Part shown: in pieces, positions 439 through 64,000 of the stretch
Position numbering within the stretch: position 1 is the first letter of the stretch
Layout: each line of letters opens with the position of its first letter
NCBI GenBank assembly: GCA_964199315.1
Contig: OZ116698.1
Span: forward strand, 25,730,001-25,794,000
Source of the DNA: Orbicella franksi
Lineage: Eukaryota
DNA: 64,000 bases
Reading direction: 5' to 3'
Position numbers and translations under genes: made by a program
Notes under the pieces: generated by a model
Databases searched by the model: none
Seen by the model: only the letters and a program-made list of their open reading frames with translations
Told to the model about the DNA's origin: nothing

Positions 439-605
439 CTAAGCTGCAAGACACTACCATAATGACAGATGATATTGTTTGCAACGAGGTGAGTCAGGAT
501 CTATCACTCGTCAACTTTGATGGAATAGACGACGTTTCAAGGGAAGATTCTTTGGAAGAAGAGAGATTAATACTGCAGCCAAACACAGTATTAGACAGAC
601 ATCTG
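439..605 (+). CDS. Cluster gene copy A, penultimate exon (AKLQDTTIMTDD...LILQPNTVLDRHL)
   Basis: Acceptor ttaattcag|ct at 438 (phase 1) and donor catctg|gtaagc at 606 (phase 0). The peptide end matches copy E (ISLQHHTVLDRHM|gtaag) and copy C (VVLRPDTKLDKRK|gtgag). Confidence 0.85.
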
Positions 606-928
606 GTAAGCAGATTGGTCAGATATTATTATATAATGGAGAACTAGAAGCTGGCTAAAGGTTCCAGGCTAGGTTTACAATTTACTGGCTCTAAACGATA
701 TTCAAGGGGTGTACATTCTAACCTGTCAAAACAGATAGTTATCATGAAACTTTAACCTTGCTTGAATGTCGGACTAAAAATTCCAAACGGAATGAGTAAT
801 AGGAAAGGTGTCAATATGTAATGGACAGTTCTGAAAACATTTGTTTTTTAATATTAATACACGTAGGTTTATCGAAGGCGTTGATGGGATCAATTTCTAA
901 ACGTAAATCGTCTGGTTCCGTTTTTCAG

Positions 929-1279
929 GTCGCATCATACTACAGTCAGGAGCCGAGGATCCGTTATGTTGTTGAACAGCCTGAGCTTCCTGCTTTGTTG
1001 AAGCTGGTGGCAAAGCGATCTATGCCGGTCGGGGATCGTCGGAAGAAAGCCAGGAGAAAAAAGTCCACTGATAAAAACTTTTGGTGGGCTTGTGGCCACT
1101 GCTTTTTTGAACGACAAAAAAAATCGACCATCAGAGCTCATTTAATTCAAGAAGTTTGTAGAAAACCAAGACTGCAAAGACAAATGTCGAAGAGAATACG
1201 TTCTGTTTCCGAGTTAGAACATCGATCCGAGCTTGACAAGTATAGACATGATTCATGGAAAAGGTCGATATCAATTTGA
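929..1279 (+). CDS. Cluster gene copy A, terminal exon with CCHC zinc-finger-like motif (WWACGHC...H...C)
   Basis: Acceptor gtttttcag|gtc at 928, open to the stop at 1279. Homologous to the terminal exons at 34820, 43764 and 63924. Confidence 0.88.
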   Translation, partial: VASYYSQEPRIRYVVEQPELPALLKLVAKRSMPVGDRRKKARRKKSTDKNFWWACGHCFFERQKKSTIRAHLIQEVCRKPRLQRQMSKRIRSVSELEHRSELDKYRHDSWKRSISI

Positions 1280-2550
1280 AGAGATCTTTAGCTTAGAAAT
1301 TTAAAAAAGAGGTTTATAACATAAATGAGAACGTTGTTACATCTTTTTAAAATATCTTTTTTAATAGTTTCAACTACGTCCTGTGGTTTACAATTTGCAG
1401 AACATTCGAATCGGTAAGAGTCCTTATTGGAAGAAACACAAGTTCTTTTCCTTTGACCCGTACTTTCTTGCCTAAACAACAGGCTTGAGATGTAACGCGT
1501 TGTGCGGAACCACTGTAAGCCTTTATAAGAGACTTTATAACTAGAGTAAGCACATTTCATGACATATCATTTCTATTAATAACTGCGTGACTGGACCCAC
1601 GTATATGTCCCGTTTCCTGTTTTACCAGGTTACTATGGAAAATTTCACTCCCTCTTACAAGAATGTCTTCGTGTCGAGCTGTAACCAGGAACAGGTTTCT
1701 TTCTCAGCAAATTCATGACCTGTTTTGAAACCTTTTTCGCAGTTATTCGTTATGAAAAAAAGTCCTGCACTCCCTTGCCTAAACACAAGGTTAAGCTGTT
1801 ACGCGAAGTGCGGAACTGCTTTAAGCGCGACAGCTAGGTCGATCGAGTACTTTCTAGAATTGCATTACGTGACCACTCCGGCGGTCATTAATTTTTTTTT
1901 TCACTACGTGACGCCTTGAACATTTAGAATATGAATTTAAAACTCACAAAGAAGACGACCGCATTGCCGGTCAATGTCATTTTGAGAATTGAGCTGAAAC
2001 CAAAATCTTCTGCACAGTTAAATTTTTAAAAGAAATCTTCTGCATTGGACGAAACCAGAACATAAAAATGACCATTCTAAAGTTAGCTGTACACAACAAT
2101 CATGACTGTCAAGAGTGAAATGTTTACAAAGTGTTACAAAGTGTTTTCTAGACTCGTTGACCCCGACGGCGCGCTATAGTCCGTCAAAAGCAAATCAAGC
2201 GAGCTACGAAGTAGTCGTAACACTCGTAACCAAACATGGATCAAGCATCGAGATATGTAAACCAGTGGGTTGAATGGAACGATGTGAGGATAGCAAGCTG
2301 CGCTTGGAGAAAAGGGAAGAAATATAGAGAAGGCGAACGCCGAGTGAACGATAACAAATATTGCACAATCATTGTCGAACGCCTTTTGACTAAAACCGGA
2401 ACAGTCAGAGGCCATAATCGCCTTTTGTTAGCTAAATTTGGGTGGTTATTTTTAGCTTTGAACTCTGATTTAGAAACAAGAGAAAGCTGACATCACTAAT
2501 TTTTACCGCTATTGCTTAATCACTTCTGCCATTGCAAGTTCTATGTTTTG

Positions 2551-2592
2551 CTCAAGACGTTTCGGCTGGTGCTTGAGCCTTCATCAGTTGAA
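2551..2592 (-). ncRNA. Minimal type I hammerhead ribozyme motif (Penelope-like element remnant)
   Basis: The minus strand reads UUCAA-CUGAUGA-A-GGCU(caagcacc)AGCC-GAAA-CGUC-UUGAG. This gives both core boxes, a 4-bp stem II, a 5-bp stem I, palindromic ACGU as stem III and a GUC cleavage triplet. Confidence 0.7.
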
Positions 2593-3186
2593 ATACTAAC
2601 GTTAGTACGCGTGATTCAAAAACCAGCGCGTCGAAAGCGCGCTGAGGAAACTTCCGCGTGAAGTTTCAAGAAAACGTAGCGCGAGAGTTATGCGCGCGCC
2701 AAAGACTTGTAGACTTCTACTCTATTTTTAAACACATTGGAGACTGGGCAATGGTCTGGATTGGAGCCAGAATTATAAGTTCTAGAAAACAACCTAACTC
2801 ATCACCAGTTTATCCTAAAATTAACTTATTTACATCGTTCGAACGTCTTGAATTGAAATACGTGACATCCTTTGTAGTCTGGCACGCTTTCATTGGCGGT
2901 TGGTAGTCACGCGAAAAAATATTGTGCATAAGAAGTCAAATATTTAAAATCAAAATCAAAAAATAATTGTAATAAAAAATCGTAAGGTCCCAAGTGTCAC
3001 TAAATTCCTAAATGCCCCACTTAAAAGGAAAAGAACTTAAAATTCACGGTCTTTGGAATCCGTGTACGAGCCGAGTAGGTGGCAACAGTATGTGAACTTT
3101 GTACACCTCACGTGTCCAGTCGAGTGCGGAGGATGTCACAGCAGATTCATAGCAGACTGTTCTGAAAACATTTTTTTTTTTTTTAA

Positions 3187-61805: not shown

Positions 61806-62282
61806 AATCTTGAATTATATGTCTGTAGAAGACTAGCTGGTGGTGCAAAACATTGACCAACAGGGACAGTGCTCTGTACTACATCCGCAAAGAAGTAAAT
61901 ATTGAAAGACTATGGTTTTATACCACATACAGTCATACACTCGTGTATCTCAGAGAAACTTTATATATTTAATAAGCATATTAGCAAAGTTTGTTTTGTT
62001 CGAATACAATCACGTGCTTATCGTAATAGAAAGCCAATACAGAGAATGATTTGAACAAAGTAGTTGATAAATAGAAATAAGAGACATTACACAAAACTGG
62101 GAGTTCAGCAGTTACTAATATCGCCTTGGAAAGGGAAGAAAAAAGAAAAAAAAAAGAAGTTATTACAACTCGGGGTATTCGTATTTGGTAACAAATCCAA
62201 GCATGAGCCCACCGAACAGGGCTTAACTTTGTTGAGCGGACGAGACGCGGTGCTGTCCTTGTGGTATTATGACTCTAAAAGT

Positions 62283-62405
62283 AAAGTCTGCATACGCGAC
62301 AAGTGGCTCATCAGGCCGGAGCTTATCCCGGTTTCAGTAGCATGAAGCAACTAGGAGTATTTCTATTCCCCCCTGGATGCGATGCTAGTCCATCGCAGGG
62401 TTACC
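62283..62405. mobile_element. SINE-like dispersed repeat fragment, with an inverted copy at 44655-44720
   Basis: tctgcatacg..caagtggct.atcaggccgg.gcttatcccgg.ttcagtagcatgaagc occurs at both sites in opposite orientation. Confidence 0.55.
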
Positions 62406-63582
62406 CATTCATGGCTTCTCATCGCCATGAACAAAGGAAAGATAAAAGTATAGAATGGTATGAGGTGAAGGAAACGAAAGGATTCATAATAAATCATTGT
62501 CTTGAGATTTTTCAAAGGATTAACAAACGTTTCTCTACAATAGATTCTTGGTTTCAAATGGTGACTATGCTTAACTGAGTAAAACGTCCCAGTCCTCATT
62601 AGAAGGGTTTCTATGGTGTATTTTGAAACCATAAGCACATACCACATTGTATACAAGCATTTAAGCATAACATTGATCGAAAACTGGCCACCGCTGTTCT
62701 CATCCCTAAGTTACGGTGGCCGCTGTGGAGAAGTTCAACTGTATTCAGTTTTAAACCTCACAGCTCTGGTTCCAAAGTGAACTTTACTCAATTACTGTTG
62801 CTTTTCGATACTCCTTGAGCGCCCTAAATGATTTAAACTGAACCATCCTACTGTCAGTATTTTGCTTTACTATTTAAATTAAGGAACATTGTTCAGCAGA
62901 TGGCTGGTAATCTAGCCAGAGGTTTCCAGCTCTTATCGTTTGATGGAACAGCATTACCACTCTTTAGGAGACGTTGCTACATAAACAATTTCCCAAGCAT
63001 TGGTGAATAAATTGTACTCATCTACTTAGGGTTACCGTAGCAATAGTATTACACATTTCTGTATGCAAAATTCAAGACGTTAACCATATATTTTCAAAAG
63101 CATTATTTTGTTTTTCGACTCAAATGAGTAAGTTTAGTTACACTCCAAGAAATGGAGAATGAATTGCAACCATGATACACTGGGAACCCACAGAAACCGG
63201 GCTGGGTGACTTAGAATCGGCTTTACAGTCCTTTACCCACTATTTACATTCTGTGACTGCATTTTTTTTTTTAAAAGTCCAAAGTCGTTTGCAGTAAAAT
63301 GCATATATACTTCCACAATTATTATCTTGTGGACCACGTACTATCTACTAGACAGCTTCATGTGTGCAGCTTGTAGAGATGTTCTTCAATGCGTCATAAA
63401 TTACAAATCAAAGCTAACCACAAATACTATAAATTTTTAGAACACCAGTGCATAAAGACATGTATGCTTAACTTATTTTCATATTTACAACAACAAAAAA
63501 AACACATGCTGCTATGTAACTAGTCTACACCAGGATAGTATATATTAATTGCACACATTTTACCGGCCGATAAGCAATAACC

Positions 63583-63924
63583 CTAGGCAAAAAGAGAGTC
63601 CGTCAACGAATATCCTTCGAACGTGTCTTCCTGCAACTCGCTCTGACTCAAGCTTGTTGATTTTCTCCTTGGCGCTTTAACGTTTATCGGCCTTTGACAA
63701 ACCCTTTGAATGATGTGAGCTTTTATACTCGATTTCTTCTGACGTTCGAAGAAACAACGCCCACAGGCCCACCAGAAAACTTGCTTAGTGCTCTTGCGAC
63801 AATCTGTCTTGTGACCCGTGCTGACCTGCAAAGAGCGTTTTCCAACCAGCTTCAACATACCAGGGAGGTCAGACTGCTCTATAACATAGCGAATCTTTGG
63901 GTTGTGACGGTAATACGTTGTGAC
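63583..63924 (-). CDS. Cluster gene F, terminal exon (upstream exons lie beyond the window)
   Basis: Acceptor atattccag|gtc, nearly identical to 43423-43764. The downstream ~1.2 kb (62420-63580) is also homologous to 42120-43420. Confidence 0.85.
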   Translation of the reverse strand, partial: VTTYYRHNPKIRYVIEQSDLPGMLKLVGKRSLQVSTGHKTDCRKSTKQVFWWACGRCFFERQKKSSIKAHIIQRVCQRPINVKAPRRKSTSLSQSELQEDTFEGYSLTDSLFA

Positions 63925-64000
63925 CTGGAATATATTCATTAATTCATTAATTTTCTTTAACAGTGCAAAACTAAAGGAGAAAAGTATTTGGAGTTTACTT

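Follow-up and report, generated by a model that had tools for sequence, protein, structure and literature searches.

A tandem cluster of spliced genes in the stony coral Orbicella franksi encodes an uncharacterised protein family with a predicted Ig-like domain and a putative C2HC zinc site

A 64-kb stretch of the 497-Mb genome assembly of the stony coral Orbicella franksi (C1:25730001-25794000, contig OZ116698.1; hereafter the window) carries a tandem cluster of related genes, and the results described below show that this cluster is real, spliced, expressed, under selective constraint and not a transposon. The window holds a complete gene (gene C), a second complete gene that converges on it (gene E), the 3' ends of genes A and F, and the partial copies A' and B. 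The encoded proteins are predicted to combine an acidic N-terminal helix, an immunoglobulin-like (Ig-like) beta-sandwich and a basic C-terminal domain that contains a putative zinc site of the C2HC type. Judging from sequence and modelled structure, we give about an even chance to the view that they are intracellular, probably nuclear, DNA- or RNA-binding regulators.

Two polyA raw-read RNA sequencing (RNA-seq) runs and one transcript assembly were aligned to the region of gene C (29700-35650). The read depth rose in five high blocks and fell to near zero in between, and junction reads with GT..AG borders were detected at 32072|32392 (46+8 reads), 32661|33910 (62+18), 34014|34301 (63+5) and 34476|34820 (57+5). 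In addition, 83 reads (71+12) and one contig that ended at exon 2 carried a further 30 bases that match 26104-26133 exactly; as these are the last 30 bases of exon 1, the first junction of gene C is 26135|31800. We also considered whether exon 1 of B is spliced onto gene C and rejected it, as the reads entering exon 2 all carried gene C's own exon 1. Every junction of gene C is supported by reads, which was the RNA-seq check that the original prediction, made from the letters of the window, had called for. The exon lengths of 178, 273, 270, 105, 176 and 372 nt give intron phases of 1,1,1,1,0, an exact match to those predicted, and the spliced frame is open over 457 codons from the first ATG at 25958. 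Gene C is complete, as had been claimed, although its product has 457 amino acids (aa) and not 458. Its 3' untranslated region (UTR) extends beyond 35650.

Minor forms of the gene C transcript were also observed. An acceptor at 32568 within exon 3 was used by 6+4 reads, compared with 46+8 for the major site, and drops 59 aa of the beta domain; the 399-aa product is that of the NCBI entry "uncharacterized protein LOC110042126 isoform X3" of Orbicella faveolata (P0056), which gene C matches nearly residue for residue. For exon 5, a NAGNAG acceptor 3 nt farther upstream is used as an alternative (63 versus 20 junction reads in run X23), and this form parallels annotated isoform pairs of 447/448 aa in Acropora. 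A 3353-nt transcript contig (run X1) contained 2806 nt upstream of exon 2 (31798), compared with the 178-nt coding part of exon 1, and may reflect a long 5' UTR of gene C, additional 5' exons or the retention of sequence upstream. When RNA reads were compared with the genome over 33564-35413, 7 of the 10 listed differences were sense-strand A>G changes, of which two were fixed in the reads and three were near 50%; these could be alleles or the product of adenosine-to-inosine editing.

For the genes other than C, expression is supported indirectly. Up to 59% of the words sampled from the last exon and 3' flank of gene E (42900-43870) were present in contigs of RNA libraries, which indirectly indicates that gene E is expressed. 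Relatives recorded only from run assemblies or from JGI metagenome or metatranscriptome contigs of 1.7-3.9 kb are the tree neighbours of E and F (P0073, 453 aa), G (P0060), A (P0077) and C (P0053), G being a further family gene in the flanking DNA. A G-type member from Acropora was found as an uninterrupted 437-aa open reading frame (ORF) on a metatranscriptome contig.

Exon copies were located by tblastn and tblastx with exon pieces as queries, and the flanking DNA was modelled over 20 kb to the left and 30 kb to the right of the window (Table 1). Because the expectation values (E) of the exon copies were 1e-16 to 1e-100, frames were intact (genes C, E, F, G and the copy on contig C15) and splice sites were canonical (AG/GT at every intron of E, F, G and the C15 copy), chance similarity is excluded. 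The family exons lay where they had been predicted, confirming a tandem cluster of at least four genes and two partial copies. Genes A and F are indeed cut by the window edges, and both are completed by exons in the flanking DNA, the remaining exons of gene F being located 0.3-5.6 kb past the window end. The fifth family gene, G, lies in the flank, and a sixth full copy is unlinked, on C15. A profile search of the whole genome returned seven loci for the C-terminal domain, all but one of them inside the cluster; the genome has six full beta-domain exon pairs of the family and six full genes. Gene A was modelled for exons 2, 3, 5 and 6 only, with one GC donor, and is 96% identical to the transcript-derived P0077 (450 aa). 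The length predicted for gene E without exon 4 was reproduced, but the 452 aa claimed for the form with this exon was not, the canonical exon giving the length shown in Table 1; a homologous exon is present in the transcript-derived P0073 and is also kept in gene F. Of the partial copies, A' has a frameshift at ~4265, inside a truncated finger motif, and belongs to a duplication of ~0.5 kb (854-1340 at the end of gene A versus 3995-4504) that is 85% identical. B retains an open frame and its GT donor, no exons were found downstream of it, and it originated in a 360-bp duplication of the 5' end of gene C (25812-26167 versus 11399-11743, 74% DNA identity).

Table 1. Family genes and exons in the window and beyond it. 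Positions are window coordinates unless a contig is named; negative positions and those above 64000 lie in the flanking DNA.
Feature	Position	Strand	Basis or product
Gene A exon 1	near -8666 (~8.7 kb left of window start)	+	flanking DNA
Gene A exon 2	-1992..-1717	+	flank splice model
Gene A exon 3	-1365..-1087	+	flank splice model
Gene A exon 5	469..605	+	tblastn, splice model with AG/GT sites
Gene A exon 6 (last): basic C-terminal domain, C2HC site, stop codon	929..1279	+	tblastn/tblastx, splice model
A', partial duplicate of gene A last exon, pseudo-exon	3995..4443	+	tblastn matches in two frames
B, orphan exon 1 with LEQQLNDIDEFI motif	11534..11707	+	72% aa identity to gene C exon 1
Gene C, complete	25958-35191	+	RNA-seq and splice model; 457 aa
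Gene C exon 1: start codon, acidic N-terminal helix	25958..26135	+	read consensus matching 26104-26133
Gene C exon 2: beta-sandwich first half	31800..32072	+	RNA-seq depth, junctions
Gene C exon 3: beta-sandwich second half	32392..32661	+	junction reads
Gene C exon 4: variable linker	33910..34014	+	junction reads
Gene C exon 5: helical segment	34301..34476	+	junction reads
Gene C exon 6, coding part: C2HC domain, stop codon	34820..35191	+	junction reads, 2570-nt transcript contig
Gene E, tail to tail with gene C	59098-43423	-	408 aa; 449 aa with exon 4
Gene E exon 1	58909..59098	-	tblastn/tblastx, splice model
Gene E exon 2 (beta 1)	57719..57970	-	tblastn/tblastx, splice model
Gene E exon 3 (beta 2)	55221..55475	-	tblastn/tblastx, splice model
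Gene E candidate exon 4, 123 nt	54288..54410	-	canonical AG/GT, phase 1
Gene E exon 5	44409..44596	-	tblastn, splice model
Gene E exon 6: C2HC domain, stop codon	43423..43764	-	tblastn/tblastx, splice model
Gene F	69565-63583 (last exon 63583..63924)	-	409 aa; 450 aa with exon 4
Gene G (flank)	78382-74612	-	465 aa
C15 copy, unlinked	C15:928996-924019		463 aa

The full-length protein was modelled with AlphaFold2 from a 23-sequence alignment, and the C-terminal 118 aa were folded alone with 33 sequences. In the full-length model the acidic motif forms a helix at residues 8-25, and residues 84-225 form an Ig-like sandwich (predicted local distance difference test, pLDDT, mostly 70-90), followed by a disordered linker, a helix at 280-295 and a structured C-terminal part. 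Within the beta domain, conservation peaks in a segment (VDLGSVY...VYxLEKADVxxRNKWE) that was modelled as a poorly ordered loop. Folded alone, the C-terminal domain had a pLDDT of 81.6 and a predicted template-modelling score of 0.69, and it consisted, in order, of two short strands and a helix, a hairpin, a disordered basic loop (RRRANGxK), the W-A-C-G-x-C strand, the helix with the His and the last Cys, and a basic helix of 22 residues. All four putative ligands of the Cx2Cx12Hx5C site (three Cys and one His) are invariant or nearly so in the 33 sequences, including that of Nematostella. The isoelectric point is 4.05 for the N-terminal 82 aa and 10.8 for the C-terminal domain, which has 31 Lys and Arg versus 11 Asp and Glu residues (net +20). 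Composition and models are in good agreement with the order of parts given in the original prediction, namely an acidic N-terminus, a beta-rich domain, a variable linker, a helix and a CCHC finger. Neither a signal peptide nor a membrane segment was found in the six gene models of the genome, in which the maximum 19-residue hydropathy was 1.36; given this value and the acidic helix at the N-terminus, a secreted or membrane protein of the Ig superfamily was rejected.

Searches with single exons, full-length homologues and the 33 C-terminal sequences gave nothing significant in Pfam, and sequence-profile searches of the PDB with full-length and C-terminal alignments gave no match. A feature search of the ESM Atlas with exon 2 produced no usable match, and the fold of the C-terminal domain had no convincing neighbour in the PDB (Foldseek, VIA wide), the AFDB clusters, the Atlas or BFVD, the sole lead being a match to A0A3R7MVB8 (E 8.5e-3, 26% identity). 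No paper on the family was found by locus tags, accessions or topic. With the Pfam, PDB sequence and fold searches empty or generic only, the statement that the proteins belong to no named family has stood, and a full-length match to a well-characterised family or to a transposon protein, either of which had been named as grounds for abandoning the prediction, was not found in Pfam, PDB or profile searches.

At the level of the fold, the model of the beta domain is a sandwich of two sheets that can be superposed on Ig-like domains, and its structural matches were generic Ig-like ones only. This probably intracellular sandwich of ~140 aa stands between an acidic N-terminus and a basic C-terminus, a layout resembling that of p53 or Rel proteins, but there is no sequence match to the transcription factors with an Ig fold (Rel/NFAT, p53-like, Runt, IPT/TIG), and no Runt, p53, T-box or STAT chain was among the best 50 structural matches. 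A DNA-binding domain of the p53-like, Rel or Runt type was rejected, as no specific structural match rose above the generic Ig-like folds. The C-terminal domain resembles C2H2 and BED fingers in ligand spacing, in the aromatics before the first Cys, in the Cys-Cys hairpin and in the helix that carries the His and the last ligand. In contrast to these fingers, the last ligand of the coral family is Cys and not His, the single finger is embedded in a beta-sheet domain of ~118 aa, and no Pfam match to zf-C2H2 or zf-BED was obtained. For zf-BED (PF02892), the 33 C-terminal sequences gave no match up to E 10, nor did five full-length proteins up to E 1; the coral pattern F-W-W-A-C-G-x-C-x12-H-x5-C is a loose fit to the BED pattern (Cx2C...H-x3-5-[H/C] with upstream aromatics), and the pattern alone does not define a family. 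A classical C2H2 finger (PF00096) was rejected as well, the fourth ligand being an invariant Cys after five residues, with no Pfam match.

We compared a profile of the last exon with 1.84 billion cluster representatives and obtained 25 proteins at E <=0.001, none of them longer than 511 aa; every representative checked was from a coral or from Nematostella. The named members, all "uncharacterized" or "hypothetical", come from Acropora (five species), Montipora, Porites, Pocillopora, Stylophora, Oculina, Orbicella and Nematostella. The Nematostella relative has 264 aa, with recognisable beta-2, exon-5 and last exons; at its locus, no acidic N-terminal exon was recognised and no local cluster was found. 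By these sequence comparisons, the known range of the predicted C-terminal domain is confined to hexacorals, represented by stony corals and the shorter Nematostella relative.

Three old clades were recovered in a maximum-likelihood tree of 39 proteins. Gene C belongs to the C-type clade (9 rows); gene A belongs to the A-type clade (6 rows), whose named members come from Pocillopora and Oculina only; and G, E, F and the C15 copy belong to the G/E-type clade (23 rows). Acropora, Montipora, Porites, Stylophora, Oculina and Orbicella are all represented in both the C-type and the G/E-type clade, and E, F and P0073 form a young group. The pairwise ratio of nonsynonymous to synonymous substitution rates (dN/dS) was 0.19 for G versus the C15 copy (dS 0.80), 0.36 for E versus G (dS 0.69), 0.35 for F versus G (dS 0.68) and 0.54 for E versus F (dS 0.11); these values show constraint, which is looser in the young E/F pair. 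In Oculina, a G-type gene has a second family gene (449 aa) 3 kb downstream and a 615-aa gene head to head upstream, and several members from Oculina and Stylophora are on single contigs with neighbouring locus tags, so the cluster is common to other corals. Given that old clades exist side by side with the recent E/F pair, the frameshifted A' and the orphan exon B, birth-and-death evolution with uneven divergence, as proposed in the original prediction, is a fair description of the family.

A full-length profile search of the genome also uncovered beta-domain exons outside the finger-bearing family. One such paralogue, which we call H-type, is located outside the window and head to head with gene G (C1:25822577-25825906, equivalent to L008:2577-5906, + strand); H-type sequence was also noted at L014:1-3597 (- strand). 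The H-type gene shares with the family an acidic N-terminal helix (L-x-D-L-D-E-I-L type), the pair of beta exons and the intron position TIG|PVEL, but differs from it in that no C2HC domain was found; it is likewise uncharacterised. The 615-aa head-to-head gene of Oculina is an H-type orthologue without a Pfam match. Four further loci carry the beta domain only (C1:24404794-24406444, C1:25844973-25845287, C1:25630979-25631368 and C2:16616173-16616331), and a region-restricted protein search for distant H-type relatives returned only known family members. In the AFDB clusters, the beta-domain region matched three unnamed proteins of 836, 450 and 598 aa (A0A3M6UAN5, A0A7D9DIM3 and A0A6S7GEM3; Foldseek E 4e-14 to 7.5e-11), the likeness being one of fold only. 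Since H-type genes hold the N-terminal motif and the beta exons without the C2HC domain, the module made up of this motif and the Ig-like domain is older and wider than the finger-bearing family. A weak similarity to the beta domain at 23181-23459 (+ strand; 24% identity over 101 aa, two stops, E 0.005) extends through the point where exons 2 and 3 would join, with no intron there; we rejected it as a family copy and treat it as chance or extreme decay.

What points to a nuclear protein that binds DNA or RNA is the invariant predicted zinc site with C2H2-like spacing, the basic domain with its helix, the acidic amphipathic N-terminus and the lack of secretion signals. The narrower term used in the original prediction, a transcription-factor-like nuclear regulator, draws on composition, the putative zinc site and the predicted Ig-like fold. 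In such a protein, the basic C-terminal domain, with its beta-sheet packed on the Cx2Cx12Hx5C site and the long basic helix that follows, would contact DNA or RNA; the Ig-like sandwich with its conserved loop would add specificity or bind a partner; and the acidic amphipathic helix (L-x-D-I-D-E-F-I) would recruit co-factors in the manner of an activation motif. Several points weigh against this reading. A zinc site within a basic region is also seen in proteins that bind RNA or other proteins, structural matches of the beta domain to cell-surface Ig domains and to accessory domains of enzymes equal or surpass those to the Ig folds of transcription factors, and a nuclear export signal or a helix for docking a partner would be equally plausible roles for the N-terminal motif.

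One might instead envisage zinc-stabilised adaptors or RNA-binding proteins, in which the Ig-like domain and its loop bind partners and the basic domain binds RNA or acidic proteins; we regard this as possible but doubtful. It would be consistent with the generic fold matches of the sandwich, with the C-terminal domain matching no known DNA-binding fold, with the flexible loop modelled where the beta domain is most conserved, and with the H-type paralogues, which imply that the shared module works without the finger. However, a net charge of +20 together with ligands spaced as in C2H2 fingers and a basic helix downstream is most typical of nucleic-acid binders; these features do not separate DNA from RNA. 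A fast-evolving family for genome defence or immunity, tracking transposons or pathogens, appears improbable. The cluster resembles those of KRAB zinc-finger genes in vertebrates in local duplication, divergence, decay of copies and surroundings rich in transposable elements (here LINE and hAT remains), and the recent E/F pair with its dN/dS of 0.54, the pseudo-exon, the orphan exon and the several lineage-specific copies in Oculina and Stylophora would fit the turnover of defence genes. In contrast to KRAB clusters, the proteins of which are unrelated, the coral family is small, its three main clades are old with orthologues kept across the corals sampled, each protein has a single invariant finger and not a variable array, and the low dN/dS of G versus the C15 copy also argues against defence.

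That the genes are transposon-encoded or recently domesticated, for example from a hAT-derived BED-finger protein, is very improbable. The aromatics before Cx2C and the H-x5-C that follows recall BED fingers at the level of sequence, and a hAT-like relic lies between E and F; yet neither the 33 C-terminal sequences nor the full-length proteins matched a BED or transposase family in Pfam, the C-terminal domain has just seven copies in the genome with six in one cluster, the five introns have conserved phases and confirmed splicing, the neighbouring genes are conserved in Oculina, and no representative carrying the domain exceeds the 511 aa noted above. A transposon-encoded protein was rejected on these grounds, no transposable-element domain having been found. 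The relic itself (60096-61031, + strand) is a 311-aa ORF that resembles the RNase-H-like and dimerisation region of hAT transposases (FAM200/GTF2IRD2/ZBED5-like) by language-model features only, with no Pfam match. The introns of gene E contain a long interspersed nuclear element (LINE) at 48995-53904 (+ strand), with a coiled-coil ORF1, an EEP endonuclease, a reverse transcriptase and a zf-RVT domain, and a reverse-transcriptase fragment at 55845-57185 on the same (-) strand as the gene; because of these two retroelement pieces, gene E spans 15.7 kb compared with 3.8 kb for gene G. Its large intron also has a 10-bp tandem repeat, ACGAGTGACC, at 46468-46715 (24.8 copies, 95% matches), which reads VVTRGHSWSL in ORFs.

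Many coral genes are flagged in studies of stress and development without a function that can be ascribed to them. The family described here is well defined, is expressed and has been conserved among the sampled stony corals; it has a confidently predicted domain without a known structural relative and with an invariant putative zinc site. It is conceivable, though we think it rather unlikely, that the proteins represent a new class of animal sequence-specific DNA-binding regulators, with a previously unseen zinc-containing fold born in Hexacorallia and an Ig-like module and N-terminal motif shared with an undescribed, wider anthozoan superfamily. If the proteins do bind DNA, the cnidarian repertoire would gain a class of regulators specific to the lineage and, with an orthologue in Nematostella and CRISPR in Acropora, the family would offer a tractable case of how new regulators originate and expand; if they do not, the family would still be a clean new domain family that deserves a Pfam entry.

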